Assembly: GCA_037379345.1 (NCBI GenBank)
Contig: CM074512.1
Span: forward strand, 26,908,001-26,972,000
Source: Perna viridis
Taxonomy: Eukaryota
DNA: 64,000 nucleotides
Direction of reading: 5' to 3'
Every line of letters starts with the position of its first letter. The stretch's first letter is position 1. The translations under genes were made by a program, and so were the position numbers. The notes under the pieces were generated by a model that was not told where the DNA came from, did no database searches, and saw nothing but the letters and a program-made list of their open reading frames with translations. Positions 2-54,705 of the stretch are shown piece by piece.

Positions 2-307
2 GTCCTCCAACAGTAACTGTGGCTCAGCCATCTTACTCAGTCACTACTGGACAACAAGTGACCTTGGTCTGTACTGTGACCTCTAACTTGGCTATCAATA
101 ATGTCTACTGGCAGAGAAATGTTGGTGGTACCATAACAACCATCCAATCTAACACCAACACCAACAAATATAGTGGTAGTACTGTTAATGCACCATCCTT
201 AACCATCTCTAATGCTGCCCAGAGTGATGTTGGTACATATACCTGTTTTGCTACTAACAGTGTAGGAACTGGACAAAGTACAACGACCACTCTCAGTGTT
301 ACAGGAA
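2..307 (+). CDS. Exon 1 in window: Ig domain 1 (306 nt, phase 1-1)
   Basis: Position 1 is the G of the acceptor, by alignment to exon 2. Donor A|GTATGT. PPTVTVAQPSYSV...C...W...DVGTYTC. Confidence 0.9.
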
Positions 308-3300
308 GTATGTATTTTTGTCTCTTTTAATCTGGTAATAGAAATTGTGCCTTTGCAAAGACAAGTTACTTGTATATGTGTTTTGTCCCACCTTTGTTTT
401 TGCATGTTTTATATATGAGTTTGTCATTAACACATATAACACTATTTTACCACCAAACATGTTTTGTTTATAATTAAAGTTATTTTTTGCTGATGTTAAA
501 TAACTTGAAATATTAACATTTGTTGTATGATAATTGTCCTGCTATATACAAAAAAGTGTTTTAATGCTTCCTTTGTTATAGATGGATAGTTTGTTCATAT
601 GATCACTTTATTATAAGAATTACATCCTTGCCAGATAAATATAGCCAGCTTATGCTATAGATTCATGAAGTAATCAACATTGAGCTTAAATTGAATTTCA
701 ATGTTTTTAGCAGTAATATAAAGAATACCAGTAATAATGATAAAATGTTGTAAGAATTTAAAGAATCCTTTGCCAATAAACATTAGTATTTCAAGTCTGT
801 TAACAAAACTCTTGGTTGCCTTTCAAATCATGGTAGGTTTACTTATTGTATACTGATAAATTACTATGATCATCATTTAGATATTTTTTACAACTTATAG
901 AAATATTTGTATTTCTGTCCTTATTATATGCAAAATAATTTCCCACTTTAATATCTGGATAACTGATACATATTCCATCTTCATTAACCTCAGGTCCCCC
1001 AACAGTAACTGTGGCTCAGCCATCTTACTCAGTCACTACTGGACAACAAGTGACCTTGGTCTGTACTGTGACCTCTAACCTGGCTATCAATAATGTCTAC
1101 TGGCAGAGAAATGTTGGTGGTACCATAACAACCATCCAATCTAACACCAACACCAACAAATATAGTGGTAGTACTGTTAATGCACCATCCTTAACCATCT
1201 CTAATGCTGCCCAGAGTGATGTTGGTACATATACCTGTTTTGCTACTAACAGTGTAGGAACTGGACAAAGTACAACGACCACTCTCAGTGTTACAGGAAG
1301 TATGTATAATTTGGTTTGGTTAATAAGTTATAATGTATATCCAGAATTCTAGCAATATAGAGATGTCTTTTTGTTGTGTATCTTTGAGTATCATTTTGGT
1401 TTACACATCAGTTTTGTGATTGAATTCCAGTTTTGTACAGCTATTTGAGGATGCAGGTCATGATAATATACACAAATTGATGAATATAACTAAATGCATA
1501 GAAATAAAAGTGAAAATTTGTATACTTTTTAAATATGAATGAACTACTGTTTTGTTGTAGTTTGTATTTATTATCCTTCAAAAAAGAATTCATTTTTTAA
1601 TATAAAAGTAATTTTAAATAATTGAAAAAAAAACTTTCCCTGTTACATTAAAAAACATTTCCCACATTATTTTAGATCTTGATTAGCTGTAGGCAGACAA
1701 TGTTGTTTGTCCCTCTTCTGTGTTTGCTTCTTTTCCTTGTCTTTGTCTTTTATCTCTTGCAAAATAATAACATTCAACAAAATGGCAAAATTGTTTATAT
1801 TTTCTTGAGTAATTTAACTTTGTAAATGATGATAAAAATGTCGCACATAGTCCATCATTATTAAGTCTATATGTATGGAATGTGATTTGATTTCCTCATA
1901 TAAGGGGTGATTGTTAAATGTCAATCAAAGATCCCTTTGTTAGTGAAAGAAAACAAACTACGTATACAATTTGTAAGTAAAAATGAAAATAGGCATGGAT
2001 GTTAGTTGACAAAATTTTGGCTTATGTCATCTTAAAATTCAGTGTGCACTTTCTTCAGGTAATTAAAGGTGTGCTTCTGATTTACAGAAAAAAAACAAGC
2101 CGATGATCCAAACAGTCCAGATATATTTATTTATATGATTTGTTCTTTTTAACCTTGTCAAGCCTGAATTGAATGATAGTAAAATACTATATTTCAGTTA
2201 TTAATATAAATAAAGAAAATTTGTTGATTTGTAGAACCCTTTACATCACCTCTTTCAAATGAATTTAAGGATACTAGTAACTAAAAACAAAGGTTGCCTT
2301 CCATAGCTTGAGGGTCTTGTCTTTTTTGGTTTACCTAAACCACTGGCATAAAATTCTGTCTTGCTAATTTTTAGTACTCAGTTAATTTGCTTTTGCTGTC
2401 AGAAGCTTTCTTTAAGTAACCATTTATAGTTGGTAGTAATTAATAACTGACTTGCTTTAACTCATAATTTTTTTTTAAATATATTTATCACAAAATTTTG
2501 TAGCAATACCAGTAGTTAATGTACAACAAGCAACATACTCTGTTAACTCGGGACAGTCTGTAACATTGGTCTGTACTGTCACCTCAAACCTTGCTATAAA
2601 TAATGTCTACTGGCAGAGAAATGTTGGTGGTACCATAACAACCATCCAATCCACCACCAACACCAACAAATATAGTGGCAGTACTTCGTCTTCACCATCC
2701 CTAACCATCTTTAATGTTGCATCATCTGATTTGGGCACTTATACCTGTTTTGCCAGCAATATTGTTGGAACAGGACAAAGTAGTACCACTACATTAGTTA
2801 TTTCCTTTCCACCAACTGTTGTAATTCAGCAGTCATCATATTCTGTCAGTGCTGGTCAATCAGTGACCTTGGTCTGCACAGTAACATCAAGTCTTCAGAT
2901 ATCATCTGTGCAATGGCAGAGAAATTTTGGTGGTATCATAACAACCATTACATCCAACACAAATACCAACAAATATAGTGGCAGTACTACCAACATTCCA
3001 TCGTTGTCAATTTCAAACACTGACTCGAATGATGCTGGGCAATATACTTGTTATGCCTCTAACAGTGCTGGCACAGGCCAGAGTACCATAACAACTTTAA
3101 CAGTGTTGTTGCCTCCTTTAGTGAGTGTTCCCCAGTCATTTTATTCAATAACAACTGGCCAGGCTATAACCTTGACTTGTACTGTGACCTCTACCCTTCC
3201 TGTCAACAGTGTCTACTGGCAAAGAAATGTTGGTGGCACAATAACAACGATTACTTCTAACACCAACACTAATAAATATAGTGGCAGTTCAACAAACACA

Positions 3301-6300
3301 CCATCCCTAACAATCTTTAGTTCTAACTTCAATGATGCTGGCAGTTACACTTGTTTTGCTACTAACAGCGCTGGAACTGGGCGAAGCAACCCAACAACTC
3401 TTAGCGTAACTGGAAGTAGGTTTAGTAGCAGTATTTCATAATGTTACATGGTTCATGTTTATAAAAGTAGGTATGCAAGCTTTCATGCTTCCAACTTGAA
3501 TTATGTAATCCATGTATTTCATGTAACACGTGTAAGGAATTATAAGGAGAGTGAAAATGTTGATTATGTCAAAGAGACAACAAACCTGGCAGGATGAAAA
3601 ATGTCAAGGCCACTCATGGGTCTTCCATGAAATTCTTTGAAGACACATGAGTGACCTGGAGCTGACATTTTTGCTACTATTGTGGCAACAGAATAATCGC
3701 TTGAAAACTTTAAGGATGAAAGTGTAGAAAGAGCAATTTTTTTTCAGTATACATATAGAAAAATGTACAGCTAAAATCTATATTTCTGAAATTATGCAAA
3801 AGGAAAGGAAATTTAAAGGATAAGATTTTGAAAAATACTTTAAGAAATGAATTCTTCTTGTGAAAAATGCAGATATGTATACTTATATAATGAATTATTT
3901 AACATCTCCATACAAGCCTACTTAATGAACTGCTTTTAAAATATTATATATATGTTCTATTGAGCTAGCTATAGCTTTGTTCATTGCCCTTTTGTTCAGG
4001 AGTTGTGTAATCAAGGCTTTGTTCAGACTAAACTAATTTACTTTCCAATAATGATGCCCATTTTATTTTAAACCAATTTCAGACATTTCACAAGCACATA
4101 AAAAATAAAATATTTTGCAAATGTAACATTCGGGGAAAAATCCCTATGTTTTGTTACACTTCTACCATACACATTTTTTTGTGTTGTAATTATATTTTTG
4201 TTGTCTCATTTATTCACACTCTTAAGTTGGAACAGAGATTTGCTGGTGTTACTATAAATGATTCTTGTGATATATCTGGTTAATTTTTACCCCCTGTCTA
4301 CAGTAATATCAGTAAGCTAAAGGTTTTAATATTGCTTTTTTCAATTGTTTATGCATTTTATTGATCAATAAGTCTTCGATAGATATCATTTTTTGCTGAA
4401 ATAATTTTCAAGGAATATTGAGATATTTAGACAACTGTTTGCCTAAATTTTGATATTTTTAATAGCATAAGTTACAACAATACAATCGTAGCAATGCTTG
4501 GTTGACAAGTTTTCATACATATAACTTTTTAATTTTTTATAGGTCCACCCACAGTTACAGTAGCTCAGCCATCTTACTCTGCCACAACAGGACAACAAGT
4601 GACCTTGGTCTGTACTGTGACCTCTAACCTACTTGTCAATAATGTCTACTGGCAGAGAAATGTTGGTGGTACCATAACAACCATCCAATCTAACACCAAC
4701 ACCAACAAATATAGTGGAAGTACTGTTAATGCACCATCCTTAACCATCTCTAATGCTGCCCAGAGTGATGTTGGTACATATACCTGTTTTGCTACGAACA
4801 GTGTAGGAACTGGACAAAGTACAACGACCACTCTCAGTGTTACAGGAGGTATGGTTACTGCATTTTTTATATGAAATGATTTATCAGTTTGAAAAAAGTT
4901 TATCAAAGATTAATTTACATATTTAATCCAGTATTATTTTGACATGACATTACGACTCCAAAGATTTTTATTTTCAGTCGAAGATGAAATGATATAAAGT
5001 TTTGATTTTGTTCAGACTTCTTATAATTGACAAGGCAATAAAAACAAGTGAATGACACATATAAGTTTCAAAACAGCAATTATGGGTTAATTTATACATA
5101 ACAACAGAAGGTTCAGTCATCCTTAATTGTGCTCTCACACCAAATATTACTTTTTTTATAATTTGAGAGAAATTGGAGTGACATGTACAATGCTACAAAC
5201 AGGTACACTAAGACAGTACAGTGTTCACACAAACTGCCTTGTATAAGTAATGTGATTTATACCTGTTTACTGATGTGTAAGAATAGGAAAGAGTTCTGTT
5301 ATAATCATTAGTAGTAGTAGTAGGATTTATCTGCTTGCATTATTTTGGATATGATGTATAAAATTTGTCATTGAATTTCCATCTCGTGCCTTTTTGTTTG
5401 CCTTTTATTTTTTTTAGAATAGATCTGCATTTCCTTTACATTTCACGTAGTTTTAGAAGTCATTATGTTGTTATTTTCAGCCTCATAGATACTAATTGTA
5501 TTAAACAGATATTTTAGTTGGTAGTTGACAGCTAATGATATATATTTCTGGTTCCCTTTTATGGTATTAATAGAAATTAGTCTGTGATTATTTAAATAAA
5601 TCATTTTATCAAAAGCTAGAAAAATTTTTTCCATTACATGGCTTTCATTTCAGGTTCAGTATATAACAGTGAGAGAATGTGAAGCATAGACATTTTTTTG
5701 CCATTTTTGTAATTTTGTTGCACTTCAAGTATTTAATAACTGTAATTTCAGTTCCCCCTACAGTCACTATTCTCCAACCATCATATTCTGTCAATGTTGG
5801 AAACACCATAACTTTAGAATGTACTGTTACATCAACACTTCCTGTTACCTCTGTCCAGTGGCAGAGGAACATTGGTGGATCCATAACCACCATCACATCC
5901 ACTAGCAACACCAACAAATATGGTGGCAGTACTACCAGTATTCCTTCATTGACCATTAATTCAGCAGAACTTGGAGATAGTGGCAGTTACACATGTTTTG
6001 CTACTAATATTGTTGGAAGTGGACAGAGCAGTGCTACTACACTTACTGTCAATGCCAGTATGTTTAAAGATTTTTGCTGTCTACTCATACAACTTAATTT
6101 TGATTCAGGATTGCCTGAGCTTTTTACTGATTTATAATTTTTCATAATCATTATACTGGTTCTAATACATGTAGTTATTTTTTGTTATGGATAATTCTTT
6201 TCTGATAAAGGTAAAAACTTCTAACTTTATTTTGACAAATAGATTTGATTTTTTAAAGGAAATAATATGAACAATACACAAGATTGGAACTTTTTTTTTC

Positions 6301-9300
6301 TGTTAACAAAATATTGAATCAATTTTCAGATCCACCTACTGTTAATGTATTACAACCATCATATGGCGTAACAGTTAGTAACTCTGTTACCTTACAGTGT
6401 GTTGTTACTTCTAGTCTACCGGTCACCTCTGTCTACTGGCAGAGAAATGTCGGGGGTTCTGTCACAACTATTACCAGTAATACCAATACCAACAAGTACT
6501 CTGGAAGTACAGCTAATGCACCATCATTGACCATTTTAAGTGCTGAGTTGGGAGACACTGGAAGTTATACCTGTTTTGCATCTAACAGTGCAGGAACTGG
6601 CCAAAGCACTGTTACCACCCTCACTGTTACTGGCAGTAGGTTTTCATTTGCACTGTGTTCCTTGATACTCATATATAACATAGATTATCTTTATAATCTC
6701 CATTACCATTACAGAATGTTTGTTTAATGTACTCCATAAGCTAGAAGCATAATATGGTCTTGGAATATAGCTTCATACTCTTTCTTTTCTTGCTATAACT
6801 GTGTATTTTTTCATTATTCTAATAATCAATTATAGGAATAAAAATATTTTGTTTTTTTTACTCAACATACATAGGAAATGACTTTACAAAACAATTTCTT
6901 TTTGAATACATGCAAAATTATTTGAATTTTCTATTTTTTTTATCCTCAAAGTAAATAAATTGACAACATTTTAAATAATAACAAAAAAGAAATGCATGTA
7001 AGATAACATTTGGACTATCAATTATGAATGATATGACCCAAACAAATGACCTTTAATTTTCTTTTTTTTTATAAAATTGATGAAAAAATCCTGAGAGTCA
7101 GTGTACTTGACTGCCCATTGTGTTAGGCCTGTATCAAATAATGTTAACTTCTTTGATGATGGCTGTTTCAACCACATAATTACTGGATATAAGTTTTCAC
7201 TTGGCATCTTTTGTCTTGGGTTGACATACGCTGTTAAGTATACATGACCATACCATATTTGTTGTACACCTATATACACCCACCCTTATCTTATACAAAT
7301 TCAATGTACATTTTATATATTTATCTTATCCTAAGTATTGTGCCTACACTTTTGTAGCCTTTCAAATGTGTCCTTAACTGATAATAATGGTACCGGTAAA
7401 TGGATTTATTTTGGAAGAAAAAAATGCTTTAAAATAGCAGGAATGTTACATTAAAATGTATTATACTATTTTGTAAATATTGTCCTCATTATTTAAATAT
7501 TTGTACATAATTTGGAAAGCATTCGTTTACAGTTGTTATCAGTAAAAAAGATATGAAAGTGACCCTAATTTAGAATGGAAACTTCAACACACAAAAAAAA
7601 AAGAATTATTGACCTTCATATAAAACGGATTTTACAAGTGGAGTAGGTAATAAAATGTTCTAAATGGTTTCAATAGTTATTCCCAAGCCATTTTTAAATG
7701 AAATTATTTCAGTTCCCCCAACTGTCACAATATTACAGCCAACCTACTCAGTCACAGTTGGTGATTCTGTTACTCTTGAATGTACTGTGACATCTGTACT
7801 CCCTGTAACTAATGTGGAATGGCAGAGAAATATTGGTGGTACCATAACAACCATCACATCCACCACTGACACTAACAAATACACAGGAAGTACTGTCAGA
7901 GTTCCGTCATTGACAATATCAATCACAGAATTAGCAGATACTGGAAGTTATACTTGCTTTGCTTCCAACAGTGTAGGAACTGGTCAGAGTACTGTTACAA
8001 CCTTGACAGTTACTGGCAGTAGGTTTCTCTTGACACTTGGAATGGCAATATCAACCTTATTTATATATTTTTTCTCATCTTTACTGTAAGCTCTTATACT
8101 CATAACATTGATGTGCCTCCTATTCCTTGTGTCCTATGCATTCTGTCACTCAACACAAAACATTTATATTTTTTACATTGATCTAGGTTTACTATGATGT
8201 ATTTCTTTTTAAATATTTTCTTGACATTTTTTGCATGATCTGAATTCCTGGATATTTCTTTTTGCAAATTAGGAATATGGGTCAACTGTATCTGAGCAAT
8301 AAAATTGACAATGATAACTTACTAGTTATAATATACTTTCTGACTTTTATTATATGGAGAAATTAACTATTCCAATATAGATAACAGTTAATGGTAATTA
8401 TATTGGTTGAAAACTCTTTATTGGTAAACTGTATGTATTTTATACCCCCTTCTTTAAATACATGTACTAATGGAGTATAGTGATCAGGATGTCTGTTTAT
8501 CCACACATTGTATACCTTTATGCATTTTTGAATTCATCCTTCAGGGAATAATTTTTAGGTGCTTGTTTTTCCTGTTGTACATTTGCTATTTTTAATTGAT
8601 TTTAATGGGACTTTGGAATATCTTTAATAAGAATATGGATTTTGCCACTGATTCAAAATTTACAGTTATGCAATGCTGCTGTGCATCTGCTATCTGAACG
8701 AATTTTAGGTTTTCATCAATTTTACATGGACTTAAATCATATGTATCATGAAGTAGTCACAACTCCAAACCTGCCTGATGGTATTTTATGACATTTTCAG
8801 TGAATGATTATTTAATGATATTTTACACCTGCTTTTTTGATTTTTGATAAAAATGAATTTTTGGTTTCCATTAAAATGATGTAAATTGCCATAAACTCAA
8901 TTAGATGGTACATGTGTTGTAACTAATTTTCAGCCTGTTACCTCACTTAGGCTATGCCTTCTGTTGAGGTATCCATTTCATTTTAGTTTTTGCTTATATA
9001 TTTGATCTCGTTATTGAAGTAGTTTATATCAAAGTTAAGCATAGAATGATGTTTGTTTTTGTTTGTTGGGGTTTAACGTCCGAGCAGCAATATTTCAGCT
9101 ATATTCAGACGAAAGCATAGAATGAAAAGTCAAGATTATATTTGCATGTATGCATGACCTAGGTGTGTCTCTGTGGAGGGCATTCTTTTGTGAGCTTTAC
9201 TAAGAGCTCACAAAGTGTTGTTAATGACAGAAAAAGTTGACGTTAATTTAAAGCTGAAGGGAATTTTTGTCTCTGTACTGCTCTCATTTTACTTATGATA

Positions 9301-11106
9301 ATACTTCAGAATATATTTGAAGTACTATAACATTTTAAACATTGTCAAATCAATTTTAGCTCCTCCCATCCCCACAATAGTAGAGCCATCTTATTCCATC
9401 ACCCTTGGCAATGCTGTAACCCTGGAATGTTCTGTTACATCTATCCTCCCTGTCACTAAAGTGGAATGGCAAAAAAATATAGCTGGTATAATAACATCAA
9501 TTACATCTACAACTGACACCAACAAATACACAGGAAGTACTGTTAGTACACCATCCCTGACAATTTTGTCAACAGAATTTGCAGATACTGGAACTTATAC
9601 ATGTTTAGCAGTCAACAGTGTAGGAACTGGTCAGAGTACTGTTACAACCTTAACAGTTAGTGGCAGTAGGTTTCGAATATAAACTCGCTATTGGTTTCCA
9701 ACTTCTATCAGGGCTAAATGACTCTCTTCCATATTTACATAATATTGTCAACCCTGTTCTTGATTTCTATGGTATTAGTTTTTGCTGGTATTTGTTTCTG
9801 AGCATTGTCTGAAATATCTAATGCATATGACTTATTATGTATTCAATGGTTGTAGTTATATCAAAACATCTAATTTAAAACCATTTTTTCTTCTGTTTTC
9901 TAAATAATGCCAAAAACTTATTTCTACAGGCCACTTTGTCACTAGATTGTTGCTTTTTTGTTGTAAAAATAATAAAGACTGTATATTAGTGCTATCAAAG
10001 AGCTTTTATTCTTGATTTAATTTATTAAGGAAGTACAGGAATATATAGTCTGTTCCCAAAATACAGATCTATATACAGAAAGAACTACAGTTACATGAAA
10101 ATATGGTGTACTTAGATAAAAAAGCATCATCTGTTTGATAGGCTGCACCCTGTATCACTTCTACCTATGGTCTGAATTATATATATCTTTCATGCTCTGT
10201 TTGGGTATTTTCTGCTGTCTTATTTCAATAACCTAAAAACTGTGCTTTATTGATACCACATCATGTACTGGTACATTTAAAACCACTGAAATACTCTTGC
10301 ATGTTTACCGGTATATTTTTTAACTAGATACAGTTGTAATCATTTACTAATGGTAAACTACTGTACAATAGTTTTTTCAATTTCATTTGATTATTATGGT
10401 CAAAATCTGATTTTCCAGACTGATAAAACTTATTTTTCTACTTACTTATGTAACCAATCATTTTTCATGTATAGTTGTATAATTAATTTGCCAATTTAAT
10501 TATGACAAATGATGTTTTAAATCAACAGTGCTGTGCTGCTGCTCAACTCTTTCTTCACAATTTGTGAAAAGTAGTTGCAGTTTTCTATGTGGTCTTGCAA
10601 ATTCTGCATGGATTTATTTATTTGATTAATACATTTCTTTTTGTTCATTCTATTTTTTAAAGTAAACAATGGATAATAGCCTTTGAATCATCAAACATTT
10701 TTCTACTTTTTGTTTCCATCTACTTTTATTCTCTGTTATTTGTTCTTGTAATGTTTGCAGAAGTTTATATATATATGATATATATATATACTTCTGCAAA
10801 CATTACAAGATATATATATATACATACACACTGCTCCATCGGATCAAAATTGATAAGGAAGATAATGTAAAAAGGTCTGAAAAATTCCAAACGTGCGTGT
10901 ATATATATATATATATATATACAACGTCTCAGAATGTGATGACTCTATTTGCAACACTGCTCCATCGGATCAAATTGATACAGGGAAGATATATAAACGT
11001 ATAGAAAGGTCACTCTGCTGTGCGAGTTCGAGTCCCGCGGAGGGAACGACCAAAAATTTGCATCGCAAATTTGACAGTTCTAACATCGTTGGGAATTTTT
11101 CAGACC

Positions 11107-11147
<41 letters not shown>

Positions 11148-14100
11148 CCTGCTTTTCATATGAGTACACTCAGTTATGCTACAATACAAACATGCTATCA
11201 TTGCAGTATTGGGTTCATGCTTGTTACATCATTACAGCAGTGTATGCCAAATTGGTACCAGACCGAATCTCTTATTTGAACTTTTCTTCTATTTTGGGCA
11301 ACTGAAAAAAAAAAAACAAGACATGTCTGTTGGTTCTGCAGTATTTCATTTTCACTGCATTACAGTGTTTGTTGTCTTTTATACCGTCATCTGTATTTTG
11401 AAAGTCATTACTTGATTCCTGTTTCATTTCAGCTCCTCCAACTGTTACCATTTTACAACCATCATATACTGTGACTGTTGGTAACTCTGTTACCCTTGAA
11501 TGTACTGTTACTTCTGTACTCCCTGTGACTAATGTTGAATGGCAGAGAAATATTGGTGGTACCATAGCAACCATCACATCCACCACCAACACCAACAAAT
11601 ACACAGGAAGTACTGTCAGTGTTCCATCATTGACTATATCAACCACAGAATTGGCAGATACTGGAAGTTACACTTGTTTCGCATCCAACAGTGTAGGAAC
11701 TGGGCAGAGTACTGCTACAACCTTGACAGTTACTGGCAGTAGGTTCCCATTGGCATGGCTTTCCTATGTATCTAATGAACACACTATCACTCTTGCAACC
11801 CATTTTACCAACCTTTCTTATCCCAGTTACAATCCTGATGCTTTTTTTTTTATTTCACCAATTCTGCATTTAACACTTAATCCATGTTATATCTTTATTT
11901 TTACCAGCTTGTTTGTCTATTGTCTTTCTGTTTCTTAAAATGTGCCCATCTATTAACAGTGAACTTTTGATTTAGTGACTTCTGTATGGTATTTCTTTGT
12001 AGAAGGCTTACTTTATTTGAACTACTGAAGAAAAACTGATAAAAGAAATATTGTAATTAGACTTGATTTTTTTAATAGTCTTAATTATCCTTTTACTTAG
12101 AATGAAAAGTGAGTGTGAGGGAAAAAAATCAATTTGAAATGTTGCAATTGATAATTTGAGAGATAAGAGATAAATTATGCTTCAAATTGATTTAAATGAA
12201 TGAGAGAGAAGAAAAATGCTTAAACTTATTTTATGTTAGTATTTACTTAAATTTAGTGAAAAGGATTCTGTTTTAAGGTGAAAAACATAAGCTGGGTTTT
12301 GTATTAAACATTAGATAACTTCATAAGGGTCTTTTATTTAAAATTTTCAAAGCTGATCCTATTCATTAGTATTAAATATAAATCAAATGTAGTTGTCCCG
12401 TGTTTTGTTTAAAACATACATCTATCGATTTCAGCCCCTCCCACCGTCACAATATTACAGCCTACTTATTCCGTCACAGTTGGTGATTCTGTCACACTTG
12501 AATGTACTGTTACTTCTGTACTCCCTGTGACTAATGTTGAATGGCAGAGAAATATTGGTGGTACCATAACGACCATCACATCCACCACCAACACCAACAA
12601 ATACACAGGAAGTACTGTCAGTGTTCCATCATTGACTATATCTACCACAGAATTGGCAGACACTGGAAGTTATACTTGTTTTGCATCTAACAGTATAGGA
12701 ACTGGGCAGAGTACTGCTACAACCTTGACAGTTACTGGCAGTAGGTTTCCATTGGCATGGCTTTCCCATGTATTTTATCTTTACACTATTCCTGAAATCC
12801 CTGTTGCACTCTGATATATCTTGTATCAAGCATTAAGATAATTTTGTAATCAAACCCTGATGGTTCTTACACTGCTATTTCCCACTGTCACATGTATCAC
12901 TGTGTCACAATCCAAGTTTTCAAATATGATCTCACCAAACCCAGTAACAACCAACTCTTGTCTCGTATATGTAGCTACTGATAGATAAACCTTGCTTTAC
13001 AGAATCTTTTTGTAACCCATACTGCTATAATTAAATAACTAATGGACCCAGTATTAATATTTTTTGACCAAGTAGTTAAAAGATTTATATATTGTTTCTA
13101 ATTTTTGTTTTATTTGATTATGCACTTATTTTTGTTTTTATACCTTGAGAAGGTTGTAGGTTATATAGGATTACCCTACATGTATATATATGTCTGTCCA
13201 CATATCTTGTAATTATAACTCCTTCTGCACTTTTCAGTCGGTTTTGATTTAGTTTATACATGTAACGATAAGAACTTTTTGGGATAGAATACCAGTTCTT
13301 CCAACTAACACGGTCTTCTCCCCTTCCATACAATTTTAAACAACAGTTGAACTGAAGGGGAAAATACAGATTTTAATGAAATTTAGTGTAGAAGATAGAA
13401 ATCAAATGTAGATGTGCATGAAAGGAGATAATAATTGTCTTATACCTGTCAAACAGAGATAATACAACTTAAGGAGTTTTCTTCTTAAAACATCTCCTAA
13501 AACACTGAATTGATGTTGACAAATTTTTATAGAAAGTTAAGGCATCATTTGTATATATACACTAGATACGATGGTTAATCCCATGTTAATGTAATGAGAG
13601 GGGTTTAACATGAAGGGTGTCTAATTGAAGCAGGGGTATTATCTTTTGGGGTTATTTACAATGTTTATAGTTTTTATCTATTTGTAAATTGTGTATGACT
13701 TCATTTTGTTTATCAATACCATTTTAATATAAATATGTCTCAATTTAACTGATATTTTTTAATAAGTTTTTCTTTTTCCTCTCCTTTGTCAGATGTTTTA
13801 TAGAAAAAAACAACCCCCACAAAAAAACTCCTCCCCCCTCCTCCCCCCACACAAAAAAAAAAGATATGGATCTTGCCTTTTAAGGGTCATTGTTTTTAAT
13901 CTGTTGTTTTGCAGCTCCTCCAACTGTCACAATATTACAGCCAACCTATTTAGTCACAGTTGGTGATTCTGTTACACTTGAATGTACTGTTACTTCTGTA
14001 CTCCCTGTGACTAATGTTGAATGGCAGAGAAATATTGGTGGTACCATTACGACCATCACATCCACCACCAACACCAACAAATACACAGGAAGTACTGTCA

Positions 14101-41100: not shown

Positions 41101-44100
41101 TGAATAAACCAAAGTACTTTGTGAAGTCACTGTATATTACTAAAATGTATTTTGACCCTGTGCAGGTCTGGGTGTCAAAAGAATAGGCCTGCAGCAGCGC
41201 TAAGCTTGTCATAAAAGGCGACTAAATAGTGCTCAGAAATCTAGCCAGGGGCTAGGAGCTCTGCCCACAGAGCAACTGGGATGTGTGCCCCAGGTGGTGG
41301 AATGGGGTACCCCTGGTGTGTTACATGCTGGGGTTGTCAGGCTATAATACGGAAAACCTGACTGCAAACCATAGTGGTGCACCGTGTTGGGAAAGATGGC
41401 ACGTTCCTTGCACGTTAAAGAACCCTGCTGTGGTATTCGATAGGAGTATGAACCTTTGCGCTCTGCCACAGGAGGCTAAATTGCCCGACACTACCCATCC
41501 CTCCCTTTTATCTTGTGGCAATCAAAATTGGTCGACCCTGTTGTCCTTGTGTCCCATCCCTTTTTTTCATTTCGTCATCATTGTTTCATGTTAATTTTGT
41601 CATCCATTTCATGTTCATCGCCTGAATAAAGCTGAAATATTGCTGCTCAGGTGGTAAACCCCAACAATGAATCAATCAATCTAAAATGTATTTTGAACCT
41701 GGGTAAATCAAATACCTGTCTTATTCAAACAAATTGTACAGTGGTTCAGTTTAGAAAAATATCATGATATCTATGTCTTTCATGAAAGTTGAATGATAAA
41801 ATGGATGCAGTAAACAATATTTTGGTATCATTTTAGGTCCTCCAATTGTCAGCATTCCACAGAGTCAATACAGTGTTACTATTGGCAACAGTATAACCTT
41901 AGTCTGTAGTGTGACCTCTAACCCTGCTCATACCAGTGTAAGGTGGGTGAAAACTCTGAACAATGTTGAAACCGACATCACTGTAACCAACAGCAACAAA
42001 TACAGTGGAGGATCAGTAAATACACCATCTTTAACAATCAGCAGTGCCGCAAGTGCTGATGGTGGATACTACAAATGTTATGCCTCTAATAGTGTTGGAA
42101 CTGGACAAAGTCAAAGTACTTTCCTTAATGTAGTTGGAAGTAAGTGGTGTAGAGATAGAAAATATCATTGTACAAGTGGCAAGATTTTTATCATCTGTTT
42201 ACTATTGATATCTGTTTCCTTGCATAAACCATCATATAAAAAACACTTGTGTTTGTCATTAGAACAAAAAAAAAAATTCACAGATAAGATATATGTTTTA
42301 CAATGTGTTCTTATCATATTTTGTTATGTAATGAAATGTTTGACAATCAGAAAAAATATCTTCTATTATTTTTTTTTTTACAAAATCCAGATTATTGTTT
42401 TGAAGATGTATTGAACACTGTCTGTCCATAATATAATAACTTGATAATTTGATATAAAATTAATTTGAATCATAAAATTATCTTTAATGATCTTTTTGTA
42501 GATGCTCCACAAGTGAATATTTTAGCCAATACCTACAGTGTAAATGTTGGTAGCTCTGTTACCCTGCAGTGTGTTGTATCTGCCAATCCACAACATACAA
42601 CAGTATACTGGAAAAAGGTTGTCAATGGAGTTCCAACTAATGTAAATCTGGCTACAGCTAACAACAAATATAGTGGATCTACCGTCACATCTCCATCTCT
42701 TGTTATAAACAATGCAGTTGTAGCAGATGAAGGCTACTATGTATGCTATGCTGATAACAGCGTTGGAACAGGACAGAGTTCTCAAACATTCTTAGATGTT
42801 GTAGGAAGTAAGTTCATATTTGTTCTTTAAATACATATATAGGTATATTCAACTTGTGGAAATTCTTAATCATGAACTCATGGATCATTACGGTGTATCC
42901 ATCTGCACCATGAGAACTGATTTGGTCAATGTGTCATAATTTTCCTTTCCTCTTTCGTCTACCCTGTACTTGACTTTTTATATGAAACTCGGCGGATGTT
43001 TCTAGAAAAACAGAGGACACTTATCCTACCAGTGCACTTGGTCCATGCTCCCAGTTTTTAGTTGAGTCTAAATTACTCATTTACTTCAGTTCTTTGTTGT
43101 ATGTGTGTGTTTTTCATGTCTGGGTTACATTCTTTTGATTTCCAGTAGAATTTTGGTTATCTTGATTACATGGTACTCTTTAAAACATTTCAATTTGGTA
43201 AAATACCAGTAATTAATTTATGGCAGGTGTAACCTGTCAGAGGACACTTGAATATATAGACATATTTCAAAATCTTCTTGCCACAATTTTTTTCCTTTTT
43301 GTTGCTTTTCTAGGTATCTTGGTGGTTCATGTTGCATTGTAAAAAAAACATACATTTGCTTACAATAGTCAAACAGAGTCTGAAACTGCAGGTGCTTTGG
43401 TTGTTCATATTTATATATGTAAATTTGAAAATTGGGTTTAATATGGTATGGCAATGTTGTTATTCTTTACACAGAAATAGAATAATAAACTGAATAAAAA
43501 TAATTATTTAAGACCATATAGTTAAGGCTTTTTAGTGAAGAAGATATGAAATGTATGGAAACTCTGTAAGACGTGACTTCCTGTCAGACTGAAATCAAGC
43601 TTTCAGTGCTTCTAAACTATAAACTCCTGTCAGACTGAAATCAAGCTTTCAGTGCTTCTAAACTTAGTCCTCTAATAGAATCTTTATTAGGCCATTGTAA
43701 AAAAATTCATTTCTTTTCAAAAAAGTAATAAACATTTTTTTATAATAAGAGAAAAATCTCTTCTATTCTGATGAAGTGACTTAAATATTGGGAATATTTT
43801 TTATGTTTTTAAATCAGATCTTAATTTTTTTTAAAATACATGTATGAGTAATGTACCATTGTTTTCATCAATGAGTTAATTACAAGGCCCCTGTTCGCAT
43901 GTTTTTGATTGATATTGAGTCAATTTACCTATTACATAAAATTCTTTTTGACTTTTAAATTTCTAGATGTACCAATTGTCAATGTTGTTCAGCTCTCATA
44001 CCAAGTGAACCTTGGAAGTGACATAGAACTGGAATGTACAATTACATCTAATCCAGCCCATACAACTGTATACTGGCACAAGTTAGTTAATGGCCAACCC

Positions 44101-47100
44101 CAGCCTATAACCGTAACAGGATCTAACAAGTATAGTGGATCTACCTTGACAACACCATCACTTACTATCCGTAATACTGTGCAAGCTGATGCTGGAAGTT
44201 ATCGTTGTCTGGCTGATAATAGTGTTGGTACTGGCCAATCACAGATTACAATTCTCAATGTACTTGGCAGTAAGTAACACTTAATTTGATAAACTTTTCA
44301 AAATAATGAAGAAGACAGAAATTTTTATCGATGATTATACGTAAGTTTCTTTTCAAATGTCAAAGTTTAATTAATGACAAAAAAAGAAGACAGTGTGTCT
44401 GCAGTGGATGATTGAATAAAAAGGTAAACTATACATGAATTTACGCTTCAATACACACATATTCCTTTGCATACGTATGGGAGCATGGATGAATATTTAC
44501 ACATAATCGGCTGCACAACGACAGTGAAGGCGGCGTGGATGAAGTGATAGTTGGCATTGGAAAATATGACATGTAAAAAATTCAGCAGGAATATAATTGT
44601 TAAGGAAATATAACTAGGAAGAAGGAAAATTACAACAAGGTGTTTTTAAGGTTTCAGTCAGACTCAGTTCTAAGTTTTTTTTACGGAGCTGAAAATTACT
44701 CTCTTGACCGGTAAAATCAGTGTGCATATAATAAACTATTCTTATTGCTATATTATTCCATTAAGTTCATTGCCACACTCTTTCGAACTGCATGACCGCC
44801 ATATTGGTTTCAAGTTGACTGGCGTGCATGCATGTATGAATGATCTGGCGAAGTTCATGCATGTATGAACTTTCTGGCGAAGTTCATGCATGTATGAACT
44901 TTCTGGCAACAATGTTCTCGATCAATCAAAAATGGCTATAAGCACGAAGAATCTCATGATTAGAATTATTAACAGTTGATTATTGATATTTTTTTTAGAT
45001 GTACCAACTGTTGTATTGGACAAATCAGCTTACACTGTACCATATGGTGATACCCTGACCATTACTTGTACAATCACATCTGATCCATCCCACACTAGTG
45101 TTTACTGGCAGAGAATCAGCAATGGTGTTACCCAAACTATCACTGTACAGAATAATAACAAATATGCTGGATCATCCCTACAGGTTCCGTCACTGACCAT
45201 CTTCAATGCTGATGGCAATGATGAGGGAGATTACATATGTTTTGCTACAAATGCAGTTGGAACTGGTCAGAGTGGGAGAGGAACTGTAGATGTTACTGGA
45301 AGTCAGTTTCAATAAGACTTCTCCATAATCACTTTTTTTAAGTAAAATCGAAACTTTATAATTTAAAGTTAATTTCTTCTGCCATTCTGTGAAAACATAA
45401 AAAAAAGAAAAATGTCATTCTATAAAATCAAAAAAAAAGTTTGGAATGTGGTCAAAAGTGCAAGTTATTGGAGGAAATATGAAATGCCTCTCTAAATTGC
45501 TGAAGTATTATAACTATTATAAAATGAATACTACAAATTAAAAAATGGAATTAACTGACTAAATAAACGATGGGGCTCCCTCTTAATGGCCAACACTTAC
45601 ATTACAAATATATCATCAGTGTTGCTGAGTATAGCAATACCCTAGTTAAGTAGATGCTAATTATTTATTTATCTATTTAAGGTGTACCAAGTGTTAGAAT
45701 ACTGAAAAGCAGTTATTCTGTCCAGAAAGGTAATCCCATTACACTGGAATGTGAGGTTACTGGTACTCCAGCCCATACCAGTGTTTATTGGACACGTATT
45801 GTCAATAGTCAGACTGTTACTCTAACAATGACTGGTGCTAAATATGGTGGTTCTACACCAAGTTCACCATCATTGATTATATTTAATGCTGCAGAAAGTG
45901 ATGAAGGCTCATACATTTGCCATGCTACCAATGGAATTGGTACAGGCCACAGTTCTCAAACCGTTCTTGATGTCCAAGGCTGTAAGTTTTTTTGTAAAAT
46001 TAGAATATATTAAAATGTATAGATTTATCATACTAGCTTTTTGGGGCAATTAATGGGATAATATTTAACTTGTTGAACTGAAAATTTGTGTCATAATGTT
46101 TATAATAATATTTTATATTAAAGTGTATGATAAGGACAATATAACAGTTTCATAAAAAGTAAAAATAACTGTAAATAGTAATTCTTTGTAAATCAGTTTT
46201 AGGATTACCCATGGTCCAAAACTGTTATGTCTTTGTAAATCAGTTATAGGATTACCCTTGGTCCAAAACTGCTATGCTTGTGATTTGAATATTACAGGGA
46301 CAGTAATATTATTTTTCTACTTTTAGATGTTCCAAATGTTGTTGCTAGTATTACACCAACTGTCAGTGTAGGAGATTCCGTTGTTATTCAGTGTGTTGTT
46401 ACATCAGATCCTAAAGAGACATCCATCACCTGGCAGAAAGTCATTAACAATGTTCCTACCTCTTTGTCTATAACATCTAACAGTAGATACTCCGGTGGAA
46501 CTGTAACAACACCATCTCTCACCATTGCTAATGTTGAGGACAATGATGAAGGACAATACATTTGTCAGGCTACTAACAGTGTTGGTACTGGATCTAGTAA
46601 CCAGGTTTACCTTGATGTTGTAGGAGGTCAGTCATTCTTAAATTAGTTTTTTTGGATATTTTGTTTAACAATCAAGGTGATAAGCATTTTCAGTTGACAT
46701 AAAGTTGTACTAATTTACTAAATGAATCCTAATATTTTGACTTCTTATCTTATTAAACAGAATATTCTCATTTTGTTCTGAAATTTCATTTGATAGATGC
46801 TCCAAGACTGACATATGTGACACCAGCCAGGATAACAGTTCCAGAGGGTCAGTTGGTATTAGCCACCTGTGTCAGTACAGCCAACCCAGCCGCAACCTAC
46901 CGGTGGTTTAAGGACAATAGCAATCAGGTGTTTGCCACTGGCGCAGAACTTAGGATTACAACATCTCAGAGGAGTGATATGGGTGTTTACACATGTCGAG
47001 CCAGTAACAATTATGGCACTGATGATGCTCAGCTCACTGTTGATGTTCAATGTAAGCTTTAGATATGCAGTTTTATTGAAGAGTTTTTAGTTAAGGGTAA

Positions 47101-50100
47101 TACACAAAAAAATTAAAGGATAGAAAAGGATTTACACAGTTTGTTATTTTTTGTTGTACATATCTAAATGACAACCCAAAATACTGTTAATGAAGAATTC
47201 TTATAGGATTCTTTATTCTGTAATATAGGCTTGACACAATTTTGAATTTCATTTGAATTTGGGAATAGAAAAAAAACATGTTGCTCTGCAGAAAGGGAGT
47301 AATGTTGGTGAAACAAGAAATAAATTTATAAATCTACTCTCACTTGAACTTGGTTAACTTGTTTGAAAAGTATTTTTAGATGATGTACTCTTTATAGATT
47401 TTCATGACTTCGAATTTTTTTAGATAAACCTGATGTAACAATTTCGAAAACAACATCAGCCTTTAGTGGAACAGGAGGAGGATCAATCAACATTCCATGC
47501 ACATATGTTGCCAACCCAGCTGTGACTAGTGTTAGCTGGAGAAAGATTAAGGCTGGAGTTACAGATATCTTATCCATCACAGGCAGCAAATATGGTGGAG
47601 GTGGTCTTTCCCAGGCTGGTCTTACTATATACAACTTAGGATCTGATGACATAGCATCATACCAATGTTTGGCAACCAACACCATTGGTACTGGAGAGAG
47701 TGAAGTTGTTACTCTCTCTGTAGACACACGAGGTAATGATATGTGTGGAGGTTTTAAATTTTGGCAAAAAAAGACAAGGATTTTAAAAGTCAACAGAAAA
47801 CATAAACACTGCTTATTAGTCAAAACCTTGCAATCTTGGCCTGAATAAGTCCCACAATATATAAATCAGAACTACATAAGGAACTTATGATTTTTGACTG
47901 GCAGGACTCCTTATCTCTAACAATTGAAAACAGAAAAAAATATGTAACCTACCTCTAAAGCTGATTAAGAAAAAATATTCCCTCTCTAGTCATTCTACAA
48001 AATGAAAACCTCCTACTTTGTTTTAAGTATTCTTTACAAGAAATATACTTTTCTTGTTTGAATACCATTTATTTATTGCCATATATTTAAATAACATGTT
48101 TCCAGGTCCGTGGTTTTCCTCCCTGAACTAGTTGTCACATAAGTTTCTTCTTCATCATTATTGGCATTTTTAAAGTTTTTGTTTCAGTGACATGTTTTGA
48201 CAGAAATTGAAGTGACATGTTTTGACAGTAATTGAAGTGACATGCTTTGACAGTAATTGAAGTGACATGCTTTGACAGTAATTGAAGTGACATGTTTTGA
48301 CAGAAATTGAAGTAATTGATTTTACTGAAATTTTAAGTAAACAGAGAAATTTTTTACACAAATTTGGCTAAATCTCCTGCTTTGACATGAGTACCAGACT
48401 TAAATTTTTCATGAAATATGGGGAGGCTCCCTCCAAAAGCAGGAAACTTAACATGTATGCATCAGTTTCATCCTCATCTTTATGTTTGTGATTTGCCTCA
48501 ACACTTTCATCAGTAATTTCTGTTTTTCAATCATGATTGGTACTAAAATTCCTTCACCAAGTACCTGCCCTTTGGCCAGACCTTGTAACTGTAACTACAC
48601 ACACAAAACTGACCACTCTTATTGTAATTTTCTTTATAAAGCACAACCATGCAGACATAGCCAAAGAAGCAAATCTTCCATTCATAGTCAATATACCAGA
48701 CACACATAACCAATTGTATATAACCAAAGCAAGCATAACAAAGTGTATAAAGTAACCAAAACCTACATCACAGTGATTTTCAACATTTTTAAAAAGAAAT
48801 ATATGCCTGTGCCTTCCAGTTTTGGAAAATAATTTTGAAATAAATAACTGAAATGTAATACTGAAAAAAATCAACAGCAAAATTATCATGGTTTGGCATT
48901 TAGAAACATCCTTATTTTGGCTTTATTTTATAACTTGAAAAACTGCTGCTATTTGTTACAAAAATTTGAATTATAACGATATTAGAAAACAAATTCACAA
49001 ATTGAACTAATTTGTAAAGAAGCAAACTGTAATTGAATGAACAATTGTAAGCATGCCTTTATACATGTATATTTGGATTTGTTTGTAGCTGCACCTTTCG
49101 ATATTGCCATCAACCCTGTGTATGTAGATGTTGTGGCCGGAGATTCATTTGAAGCTACATGTACAGCCAAGGGAGATCCTGCTCCTAGCTTTGCTTGGTA
49201 CTATTCTGACAGGATGATTCAGACTGGACCCAAACTTACTGTCACTAGTTCTGTCAGCACTGATGATGGATTGTACACATGTGTAGCTACTAATGCCCTT
49301 GGAATGGCTCAAGCTACATTAGATGCTAATGTTAGGTGTAAGTACTGTGTAGTTTGAACTAATAATTCCTTTTTTCGTCATGAAAAAGTGATAAGTGATA
49401 TTACAACACTCAAAACTAATACCCACAAAGTCTGTTCTTCTATTTTAATATGAAAAAAGACCATTTTTTTTAGTCAAAAAGGTAAAAAAGTTTCTTTAGT
49501 CTATTATATATTTGTTATTTTTAAAATTTTACTGTGTATGTTTTTACCTTAATTTGTTTTATTATTATTATTTCTTTCTCTTTGTCCATTTAGTTACACC
49601 AATTAGCACAGTAACAACAACAGAATTCAAACGAGCTATTGGTAACCCTGTAACCCTGCATTGTTCTACCCGTGCCAACCCGGCTGCTACTGAGTGGATA
49701 TGGACAAAGGATGGTTCAAATCTGCTCAATCATTATTCTGATACCTTGTTGGTTGACATGGACAGTCTTCAGGATTTAGGAACCTATACATGTACTGCCA
49801 AGAACACAGTTGGACAATCTTCTATCATTGAATTCCATATCAAGGAAGCTGAGAGAGGTTTGATATTAGATTATATTTAAGGGCTTGTAGTGTACCCCAA
49901 ACATTTGACAGAACTTATGAAAATTTTAATAGTAAAAATGAATACATGAATGGTATCATTTAAGCTGTCTTAGTTCTCCTTTGAATTAAATCTGTGGCAA
50001 ACTTCTATTTATATTGTTTATGCCAGCTGCTCCTGTAAGACTATGTTGTAATGGAGCAAAATTTGGAAAATGACAATAATTTTACTTTTGTTTTCAAATG

Positions 50101-52645
50101 AAGATACTTGGGACTAAAGTTCAATATGAAAAATGATCATTAAACAGCTGTTCAGGATTATACAGAGAGATATACACCTACAGATAATAACATTTAAAAC
50201 TGAATCAACCATTGAAATATTTTTTCCATATTTCTATTTCAGTTACTGTTGTCAACACAACTAGTGGTGCTTTGTCTGAAGGAGAAATTGCAGCCATTGT
50301 TGTTGGTTGTTTACTTGCCATTGCTTTAGTAGCTATCCTCATTATCTGTTGTTTCACTCATGGTAAGTGATTCATAATTTCTAATAATGATTTATTTTCA
50401 CAACAGATGTGTAACAGAGATGCTTGTTAAATCCTGTTTGAGTTATTTACCCTCCCATTGATAATTCTACAATATATTAAATGTAGCAACACTTCAAACA
50501 TATATGAAAATTAAAAATGGTTCAAAATATAATATGTAAATAAACATTTTTGATTAATTTTACATCACTGTTTATTACACTTTCAATTGACTTTTTTGTA
50601 AATAATTTTATTATATAGATAGTAGTGTTTTATCGAATTCACGCTGTGAAATAAATTTGGTAATTTCACTCTCTGACTTTCTCCACCTGAAATGTCACAA
50701 CTTTGATATAAATCCGCCACTCACAGAATTTAAAATTCATGTTAAAAATATCGACAAGTTATGAAGAAATTCTATATAATAAATAGGATAATCAGTTGTT
50801 AATCATGAATAACCAAAATATTATCACTCGTACCAAGAACGCTTGAGGATTTAACTCGTTAAATCTAGGTGTTCTTTGGTACTCATAATAATATGAAGGT
50901 TATTCACTCTTTCCAATTAATTATCCTGTTAGTAATAATTTGTAATTTGACAGTAAGGAATGTGGGTAATGCTACCAATGGTTTTCTTAGAAAGCTAAAT
51001 ATAGGTTTAGTTATAAAATGCCTGAAAGTAACGATTCTGAATCAAATAAAAAACCAAGATATTCTGTTTGGAATTTAAAAGGATATTGGTAGCTTAGAAA
51101 AAGAAAACAAAAAAAAAAAAAAGGCTGTGGAGTTTTAAGATTTGATAACATCACATTCTTAATTATTTTTACCAGGCATGTGTAAGAAGAAGGAAAGAAT
51201 CGTTGAAGTACCTGTCCAACCTGAACCAAGAACCACATACAAGTAGGTTTCATCTTTATATTGTCATCATTTAACCTTTATCAGGTCCCATGGAACCCTA
51301 CACAGTAATGTAGTACTTATTTTGACCATAATGAAAACAATCCTCAAGATAATGAGAAAATTCACTATGTCTCTAATCAACTGTGAAATGAAAATGGAAA
51401 GATAATTACTGTGTCAAAAAAAATAAAATTATACAAAATACAGTACTTCAACTGGTAATATTGACTGGTTCAGTGTCGCGATCATGTTTCAAATCCAAAA
51501 TATAGGCTGCATACCTCCATACATCAACGAGGATGCATGTAAAACTTTGGTCAATTCATCAATTGTCTTTCGATTGGATTATGGCAACGCATTACTCTAT
51601 GGACTACCAGCTTGTGTCATTCAGAGACTACAAAGGATTCAGAACACTGTTGGGCGGGTGGTAACAAGAAAAAAGAAACACAAACACATTTCTCCGACAC
51701 TTGAGTCTCTCCATTGGTTGCCTGTACAGTACAGGGTGCAATACAAAATTCTGTTGTATGTTTTCAAGTCCATGAAACAAGAAATGCCACTATATATAAG
51801 TGAACTTGTAAACTTATACAGGCCATCAAGATTGTTAAGGTCTGAAAACAACTTAACACTTGTAACTCATATTGTGTGAACCAAAACCTACAGCAATAGA
51901 AGATTCGATAAAGTGGTTGCCACCCTTTGGAACGCATTACCAAAAGAACTGCATAATGCAAAATCAGTGTCTATTTTCAAAATGAAGTTAAAAACTCACT
52001 TTTTGTGACAAGCATTTTGAAGCCCTTAATTTCGTTTCTGTGATACGTAGTGCCATAGATGTTTGCTTGCTTTTGATTATTGAACCTTTGTTTTAACTGG
52101 TGATATTTTTCTTTTTTTAATGTGTACATTGTATGTTGTAGTAGCACATATATTTCTTTTCAAAGTTTTTTTTTTCCAAGATTTCAAATTTTAAACTTCT
52201 TTTTGGTAATTTTTAAATAGCAAACTTATCTTAGACTTTTTACCAAATTTATTCAATATATTTTTACTCAATTTGACTATGATTCATTTATATATATTCT
52301 TGTTTTTCTAAATATTTCCAATTTATTAACTTTAATAAATAACTAGACAAGTTTTACTACTCTGATATATTTTTGTGTGTTAATGTATTATATTTTTATC
52401 AGTAGTATATTTTTAAACATGTGATGTGATGTAAAGCTCTTTGAGTAATATTGTTTTAGATTAAGCCCTATAGAAAAATTGTAATAATACCAGTAATGAT
52501 GATAAATATATGATAGTCTTCAGAGAAAAAGTAAGGATATTATTTTTAATCTTCCTAATCAATGGCATGTATGATTTCATAAAAAAATTATAGCAGTTGA
52601 GCCTCCAACTTTTGCTTGATATTCAGTTCGTCACTAAATTCTTGC

Positions 52646-52690
<45 letters not shown>

Positions 52691-54705: not shown

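Follow-up and report, generated by a model that had tools for sequence, protein, structure and literature searches.

A Probable Type I Membrane Protein with 58 Tandem Immunoglobulin Domains in Perna viridis, a Member of a Bivalve Family Filed as Hemicentin-Like

Introduction

Hemicentin-1 (fibulin-6; HIM-4) shares with the product of the mussel locus analyzed here an array of more than 40 consecutive I-set-like immunoglobulin (Ig) domains, and the 26–30% identity between the Ig domains of the two proteins accounts for the name that has automatically been attached to the mussel sequences. However, hemicentin is secreted and carries a VWA domain at its N-terminus and TSP1, G2F, EGF and fibulin modules at its C-terminus. 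In vertebrate hemicentin-1, which served as our control, a non-Ig N-terminus of 448 residues precedes the Ig array, TSP1 modules follow it, G2F and EGF families are detected, and no transmembrane (TM)-like segment is present. Proteins carrying the 'hemicentin' label are abundant in bivalves; their functions are largely unknown, and their annotations need to be treated with caution (PMC13093298). Titin, twitchin and obscurin resemble the mussel protein through their linker-less rods of tandem Ig domains, but they are intracellular, possess FN3 and kinase domains and lack a signal peptide and a TM segment, whereas the signal peptide, the TM helix, the conserved disulphide Cys residues and the avoidance of sequons in the mussel protein point to the secretory pathway. 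Dscam, L1, Robo and the contactins are, like the mussel protein, surface proteins with I-set Ig domains, anchored either as type I proteins or through GPI; in these proteins 4–10 Ig domains are followed by FN3 domains and by tails of their own, while the mussel protein has 58 Ig domains, no FN3 domain and an unrelated tail.

Sialoadhesin (Siglec-1, CD169) is a type I protein with an ectodomain made of Ig domains only, which forms a long stalk that projects the binding site past the cell coat. Its likeness to the mussel protein is one of design: sialoadhesin has 17 domains instead of 58, its tail is short and devoid of Tyr motifs, and it relies on a single specialised N-terminal V-set lectin domain, in contrast to the repeated identical modules of the mussel protein. 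The giant cadherins (Fat, Dachsous, cadherin-23/protocadherin-15) are single-pass proteins with 27–34 repeats that form rods of at least 100 nm across extracellular gaps. They provide a functional analogy only, since their calcium-dependent cadherin repeats have a different fold and show no homology to Ig domains.

We have analyzed a 64,000-nucleotide stretch (the window; C2:26908001-26972000, + strand, on contig CM074512.1) of the AT-rich (~32% GC) genome of Perna viridis, whose assembly comprises 723 Mb in 46 contigs. The window represents the 3' two-thirds of a single gene of ~93 kb with 60 exons. We consider it probable that this one gene encodes a type I membrane protein composed of a signal peptide, 58 Ig domains, a 15-residue stalk, a TM helix followed by a Cys-Cys pair and a 135-residue cytoplasmic tail; this protein may act as a long-reach tether. 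An ectodomain consisting of Ig domains alone, a single TM helix and a tail with 14 Tyr residues had been proposed in an earlier sequence-only reading of the window; all three elements were recovered by profile searches, Pfam scans, spliced transcript contigs and local translation.

Architecture of the Gene and Its Ig Array

Using a profile derived from the domains of the window itself, we detected 44 Ig domains between positions 4 and 49847, all of them on the + strand, which bears out the earlier count of at least 44 tandem domains. Each of the 44 matches the Pfam families Ig_3, I-set and ig and retains the canonical Cys-Trp-Cys core; the invariant positions are Cys23, Trp36, Asp75, Tyr79 and Cys81. 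The Pfam scans covered these 44 domains, the tail and TM exons, several intronic open reading frames (ORFs) and the full-length Mytilus edulis orthologue XP_071159627.1. Every Ig exon has a length that is a multiple of three, is of phase 1-1, and is flanked by a polypyrimidine-AG acceptor and a GT donor. The coding features of the window are compiled in Table 1. Because one of the exons encodes three domains, the 44 domains occupy 42 exons, and the TM segment is encoded by exon 43, just as it had been numbered before. Together, the 47 coding exons of the window amount to 13,757 nt (4,585.7 codons), the length of the ~4,585-residue spliced frame reported earlier.

Table 1. Features of the poly-Ig gene within the window (positions are window coordinates).
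Feature	Position	Strand	Remarks
Ig exons, domains 15-16	2..1299	+	last two of five tandem ~992-bp units
Three-domain Ig exon, 912 bp, domains 17-19	2504..3415	+	
Twelve single-domain Ig exons, domains 20-31	4543..19281	+	includes second repeat family
27 single-domain Ig exons, domains 32-58	19692..49857	+	conserved membrane-proximal array
Stalk, TM helix and juxtamembrane Cys-Cys exon, 120 nt, phase 1-1	50243..50362	+	hydropathy; splice joints in four runs
Cytoplasmic micro-exon 1, 67 nt	51176..51242	+	GT..AG joints in four runs; frame open when joined
Cytoplasmic micro-exon 2, 51 nt	52792..52842	+	spliced contigs; open frame
Cytoplasmic micro-exon 3, 36 nt	53549..53584	+	spliced contigs; open frame
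Last coding exon, with 9 of the 14 tail Tyr residues and an acidic-then-polybasic cluster	54459..54705	+	stop codon at 54703-54705
3' UTR, to the contig ends	54706..55656	+	transcript contigs

The array had been expected to run off the 5' edge of the window, and the 100 kb of upstream DNA indeed contain 14 more Ig domains on the same strand, all within 35 kb of the edge, the first of them at window coordinate -35330 (negative coordinates lie upstream of the window); no Ig domain was detected beyond this point in the 100 kb searched. The introns in this upstream region are long, measuring up to 10 kb, and the region includes a second three-domain exon (-7859..-6945). A candidate leader exon, comprising an ATG and a 25-codon hydrophobic stretch, is located at -38270..-38195, ~2.9 kb in front of the first Ig exon. 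Its 3' border is of phase 1 and has a GC donor in place of GT, with a consensus-like context (..AAG|GCAAGT), and when joined to the first Ig domain, it reads through the junction in the same way as the N-terminus of the Mytilus proteins. It is therefore likely to be the exon for the signal peptide. An initial screen that combined an ATG, hydrophobicity and a GT donor yielded only poor candidates; the exon that we accept was found through its similarity to the Mytilus N-terminus. The extension in the 5' direction, which had been suggested as a check on the domain count, thus adds 14 Ig domains and a candidate leader and brings the total to 58.

When translated locally, the conceptual gene model that includes the leader (60 exons, 54 of them Ig exons; 18,132 nt with the stop codon) gives a protein of 6,043 residues and 628 kDa with no internal stop. 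The transcript contigs support the proximal part of this model, and the 30 distal domains and the leader were assigned to it by strand, phase, spacing and orthology; on these grounds, all 58 domains and the leader very probably belong to the same gene. The domains, each of ~100 residues, stand back-to-back, the ectodomain has 116 Cys residues in its 58 domains, and it is acidic (pI 4.95). In poly-Ig proteins, each Ig domain generally contributes ~4 nm to the length of the molecule, and the ectodomain of the mussel protein would accordingly form a rod of at least 230 nm outside the cell. The previous size estimate (at least 44 domains and at least ~175 nm) was conservative.

With respect to solved structures, the closest match by sequence is the titin poly-Ig segment 3b43 (E 7e-47), followed by Dscam, Robo and contactins, i.e., by generic I-set arrays. 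The model of a single domain reached a pLDDT of 94.8, and its fold matches generic V/I-type domains, among them antibody V domains, SIRP, the TCR and a perlecan Ig domain; the fold search with this model gave no specific lead beyond such generic Ig folds.

The TM Anchor, the Cytoplasmic Tail and the 3' End of the Transcript

Transcript contigs from four sequencing runs, derived from four studies, were placed on positions 49000-54990 of the window. The same chain of exons was found in all four of them (49089-49337, 49594-49857, 50243-50362, 51176-51242, 52792-52842, 53549-53584, and 54459 onward), with every intron of the GT..AG type; since the introns are skipped, these contigs derive from RNA. 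A lack of joints between the Ig exons and the TM exon would have spoken for several separate genes, but in the contigs of the four runs the last two Ig exons are joined to it. The loose end of the contigs in front of exon 57 matches the end of the exon at 47424-47732, and the contigs extend 7,841-7,862 nt upstream of exon 57, while the 26 preceding exons (18976 to 47732) sum up to 7,833 nt. This fit indicates that the main transcript most likely contains all 28 proximal Ig exons, a continuity that is supported by the match in length for the 26 and by direct placement on the contigs for the last two Ig exons. It also follows from the fit in length that the contigs break just inside the repeat zone, at the place where near-identical exons begin. 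We regard it as virtually certain that the TM helix and the tail share a single mRNA with at least 28 Ig domains.

The core of the TM helix consists of 21 hydrophobic residues with a mean Kyte-Doolittle value of 3.26. Acidic residues before this core and Lys-rich residues after it point to a type I topology. The protein thus has an ectodomain of Cys-Trp-Cys Ig domains, a single TM segment and a tail, as is expected of a type I member of the Ig superfamily (IgSF), and its putative signal peptide is deduced from the similarity of the leader to the Mytilus proteins. A sub-threshold Pfam match of the TM exon to DUF4690 was disregarded.

The frame of the tail is open to the stop codon upon local translation and encodes 135 residues, among them 14 Tyr, 22 acidic and 23 basic residues. 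Neither a Pfam domain nor an enzymatic domain was detected in scans of the tail exon and of the orthologue, and the ESM Atlas gave no usable match for the tail. A pattern scan of the window tail found none of the immunoreceptor motifs (ITAM, YxxL/I-x6-12-YxxL/I; ITIM, [SIVL]xYxx[IVL]; ITSM, TxYxx[VI]) and no NPxY motif; two YxxPhi sites (YKSI, YRSV) were the only matches. The second of these sites reads S-V-Y-R-T-V in Mytilus and there fits the ITIM pattern, so that it can be described as ITIM-like but is not conserved as such. Ten of the 14 tail Tyr residues are kept in four Mytilus species, a conservation that indicates a functional tail. That these residues are used for phospho-signalling, as the earlier reading proposed, is plausible but less likely than not.

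At their 3' end, the contigs extend 666-669 nt past position 54990. In several runs, they break off at a (TA)n microsatellite (55640-55660), and the nearest poly(A)-like hexamer (ATTAAA) is found at 55702; the true poly(A) site may therefore lie slightly past the contig ends. No convincing gene was found on either strand between 55.7 and 64 kb.

Three further segments were noticed in the introns of the gene. The stretch at 50600-50999 shows a summed contig depth of up to ~1,200 in all four RNA runs, with many joints that are not GT..AG and many loose ends, and in this it behaves like a transcribed high-copy interspersed repeat, not like an exon of the poly-Ig gene. In the intron between tail micro-exons, a 150-codon open frame (51427-51876, + strand) is covered by low-depth unspliced contigs only; its sequence resembles the C-terminal part of non-LTR retrotransposon ORF2 proteins, and Pfam scans of this and several other intronic ORFs gave no match. 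A 90-bp tandem repeat (4.5 copies, 96% matches) is present at 17723-18126 in the intron after domain 30.

A Fixed Base and a Repeated Distal Block

The array falls into two parts. Domains 32-58 are collinear, one-to-one best matches of domains 23-49 of M. edulis (63-83% identity); the best score is always above that of the runner-up, with a wide margin from domain 34 on, and none of these domains exceeds 68% identity to another domain of the gene. Domains 1-31, on the other hand, have no one-to-one partner in Mytilus and collapse onto a few Mytilus domain types. A like pattern is seen in three Mytilus species, with domain totals of 46, 49 and 51.

The youngest duplicates within the distal part are domains 12-16, which are encoded by ~992-bp units; the three of these units that lie upstream of the window are located at -2973, -1983 and -991. 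Their exons are 99.3-100% identical at the nucleotide level and exhibit 0-3 synonymous and no non-synonymous differences. Among the first four units, intron identity is 93-97%; the intron that follows the fifth exon (994-1299) is of unrelated sequence (~63%). Since the introns differ by 3-7%, the first four units represent distinct, real copies, although the number of copies in such near-identical blocks could vary between haplotypes or carry an assembly error. The length of the unit, which exceeds the longest period that Tandem Repeats Finder can detect (500), was measured by script. An older repeat family lies within domains 20-31, where domains 23 and 25-28 are 93-96% and domains 29-30 are 81-88% identical at the nucleotide level. 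Pairwise dN/dS values in this family are 0.04-0.21, and its introns are essentially unalignable.

The isoforms listed for M. edulis in RefSeq differ mostly by blocks of whole domains (100-714 residues), with some non-integral ends, and all of these differences are located between residues ~750 and 2,170, i.e., in the repeat zone; the isoforms are Gnomon models in a zone of repeats and could partly reflect mis-mapped reads. Taken together, the data indicate that the distal 20-30 domains are cassette exons that have been duplicated and homogenised, and these cassettes are probably also skipped. Because the proteins encoded by the cassettes are near-identical, a change in their number would alter the length, and hence the reach, and the valency of the molecule, but not its specificity.

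Avoidance of N-Glycosylation Sequons

The conceptual protein contains 520 Asn residues and 30.8% Ser plus Thr, yet only three N-x-S/T sequons (x not being Pro) are present, two of which are situated in the ectodomain. Shuffling of the sequence predicts ~153 sequons and never gave fewer than 126. The protein contains 132 copies of the reversed motif and 15 of N-P-S/T, which cannot be glycosylated, and the 27 proximal domains have no sequon at all in 2,679 residues. Orthologues and paralogues from Mytilus likewise avoid sequons (0-3 observed versus 75-132 expected), avoidance is weaker in the relatives from scallops and oysters (11-28 observed versus 52-126 expected), and sequons are not depleted in vertebrate hemicentin-1 (33 observed versus 39 expected). 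Selection of this kind is expected only if a protein is exposed to the glycosylation machinery of the endoplasmic reticulum (ER), and the avoidance of sequons thus argues for passage of the array through the ER and for its extracellular location. It also suggests that bare Ig surfaces matter for the function of the protein.

Orthologues, Paralogues and Taxonomic Distribution of the Family

When the tail exon was compared with 1.84 billion representative proteins, all genuine matches came from mussels. A gliding-motility-like protein and an ankyrin-repeat protein, both bacterial, were also hit and were rejected as artefacts of repeats and composition. Orthology of the tail to a characterised receptor would have spoken against the earlier reading, and the search found mussel predictions alone. 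The informative match is XP_071159627.1 from M. edulis, a protein of 4,924 residues filed as 'hemicentin-1-like isoform X20', whose tail is 68% identical to that of the P. viridis protein. Its 25-residue signal peptide leads directly into the first of 47 Ig domains, which are followed by a TM helix and the same tail; Ig families are the only Pfam families detected in it. Searches with the tail and the last four domains of XP_071159627.1 recovered this gene from M. edulis, M. galloprovincialis, M. trossulus and M. californianus, with many (more than 20) modelled isoforms per species.

In the P. viridis genome, the tail exon is single-copy, save for two weaker matches on contig C5. These belong to a paralogous giant Ig gene (C5:9273722-9326000, - strand) that encodes at least 55 Ig domains, continues past the examined stretch, and has a TM exon of the same type at 9279397-9279750. 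Its two related tail exons (9276172-9276456 and 9273722-9274129) are 2.3 kb apart and could be alternative 3' exons or the result of a local duplication. Other relatives comprise two further paralogue groups in Mytilus and proteins from Argopecten (61 Ig domains), Mizuhopecten, Crassostrea, Ostrea and Saccostrea. The architecture is therefore not unique to the C2 locus; the family is present in mussels, scallops and oysters and has at least one paralogue in the P. viridis genome.

Members of this family can be recognized by a signature that consists of a signal peptide, 30-61 Ig domains as the only domains, a TM segment starting with G-x-I-A-A-I, a Cys-Cys pair, the sequence L-P-x-x-x-Y-T-Y/acidic and a cluster of ~8-10 Arg/Lys residues. 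It is found in the window protein, the C5 paralogue, the three Mytilus paralogue groups, Mizuhopecten, Crassostrea, Ostrea and Saccostrea, and in part in Argopecten; the pattern 'G-x-IAAI ... CC ... G-x-C' of the TM exon is conserved across the family. Word-seeded searches, which have limited sensitivity, found the TM and tail signature in no non-bivalve protein. In the literature, we found no description of such an architecture or family; in papers on bivalves, 'hemicentin' appears solely as an annotation label. The sequences are public as automatic predictions, and we regard them as forming a separate family of type I IgSF membrane proteins that has so far gone uncharacterised. The expectation that this architecture would be hidden beneath a hemicentin-like automatic annotation has come true, as the orthologues are filed under 'hemicentin-1-like'.

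Possible Function and Alternative Explanations

In the mechanism that we propose, the 27 membrane-proximal domains would form a fixed base in which each domain is individually conserved, and the distal identical cassettes would set the copy number of a module and thereby reach and valency. The glycan-free Ig surfaces would make the contacts, and the conserved tail would couple the ectodomain through its Tyr motifs to adaptors, to the cytoskeleton or to endocytosis. As its most likely function, at about even odds, the protein would serve as a long-reach, multivalent tether for adhesion or recognition at the cell surface. A more far-reaching proposal, to which we attach a rather low probability, is that the family represents a new class of pteriomorph surface proteins, in which a quarter-micrometre, N-glycan-free rod with a 27-domain base and a variable distal block has a tunable length and valency and signals via its Tyr-rich tail. 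The copy number of the distal block would then vary between species and probably also between individuals and splice forms, and the targets of such a tunable capture device may be microbes, gametes, neighbouring cells or cilia.

All relatives bear public names ('hemicentin-1-like', 'hemicentin' or 'HMCN') that would make the protein a mussel orthologue of hemicentin, that is, a secreted matrix protein that organises cell attachments, and both the alignment with vertebrate hemicentin-1 and an uninterrupted array that exceeds 40 Ig domains (58 in our count) are in line with these names. The flanking parts of the protein contradict them. There is no N-terminal VWA domain, because the signal peptide of the orthologue abuts the first Ig domain and the candidate leader splices straight to it; TSP1, G2F, EGF and fibulin modules are likewise missing from the Pfam scan of the orthologue, and the last Ig exon is spliced directly to the TM exon, which is at odds with a secreted protein. 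Furthermore, the genome has G2F matches only at two other loci, C2:41802769-41807131 (- strand; at 41.80 Mb) and C7:24005642-24006163 (- strand; at 24.0 Mb). The C2 locus, which carries EGF-like ORFs and lacks an Ig array within 50 kb, looks nidogen-like, while the match on C7 could belong to a true hemicentin. An identity of the window gene with hemicentin is hence extremely improbable. The modules of the other known systems are missing as well, as had been stated before: the orthologue has neither a kinase nor an FN3 domain but possesses a signal peptide and a TM segment, which separates it from titin-like proteins, and the direct joining of Ig58 to the stalk and TM exon leaves no room for the FN3 domains of Dscam, L1, Robo or sidekick. 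One might also envision at least two genes at the locus, with the ~28 proximal domains belonging to the TM segment and the tail, and the distal domains 1-30 representing a separate, secreted poly-Ig gene or a set of pseudo-exons. The transcript contigs do stop at the border of the repeat zone, and the upstream introns reach 10 kb. However, the contigs stop exactly at the point at which a de Bruijn assembly would fail on near-identical exons, the distal exons are all open, phase-compatible and under purifying selection, neither a signal-peptide exon nor a terminal exon was seen between them, and the Mytilus models span the signal peptide, 46-51 domains and the same tail. We therefore consider a division into two or more genes improbable and retain the single gene as the preferred reading.

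Two further explanations concern what such a single-gene product does. The membrane anchor might be needed only during biosynthesis, so that the ectodomain is shed by cleavage within the short stalk and becomes part of an extracellular fibre, coat or matrix, while the tail serves in sorting. A very large, acidic (pI 4.95) and glycan-free ectodomain with 31% Ser plus Thr would suit lateral self-assembly, and the two YxxPhi sites, which are of the sorting type, are the only canonical motifs of the tail; but conservation from mussels to oysters extends over the TM segment, the Cys-Cys pair and a long part of the tail, beyond the needs of a sorting signal, and no cleavage motif was identified, so that we view shedding as unlikely. 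Bivalve poly-Ig genes are often found among the listed expansions of immune genes (PMC13093298), and a Dscam- or FREP-like, diversified immune receptor, in which cassettes provide many specificities, would agree with this classification, with the phase 1-1 boundaries that make any cassette skippable, and with the more than 20 isoforms modelled per Mytilus species. However, the proteins encoded by the repeated cassettes are near-identical, with dN/dS values of 0.04-0.2 and no non-synonymous change among the five youngest, so that skipping would alter length and valency and not specificity; moreover, no clusters of mutually exclusive alternative exons are present. We thus hold a role of the cassettes in generating many specificities to be highly improbable, and favor the long-reach tether, in which their number, not their sequence, is the variable property.

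Significance and Expression

Few gene sets in bivalve genomes are as abundant and as poorly understood as the 'hemicentin-like' poly-Ig genes. One coherent family can now be separated from them by means of a testable signature, and for this family, the hemicentin label is wrong. To our knowledge, its members, with 58-61 Ig domains, exceed all other membrane-anchored proteins described so far in the length of an Ig-only ectodomain. The combination of a conserved base with a copy-variable, homogenised distal block offers a model for the evolution of length and valency in surface proteins, and the near-total avoidance of sequons is unusually strong and points to bare Ig surfaces that are critical for function. 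Mussels are farmed, cause biofouling and harbour transmissible cancers, so that an uncharacterised major surface molecule of these animals is worth localising.

With respect to expression, run X6 carries a different organism label than the organism A runs. Its contigs are identical to the window (no other letters) and are ~ten-fold deeper than those of the organism A runs; the run may stem from the same species under a different name, or from a tissue with high expression of the gene.
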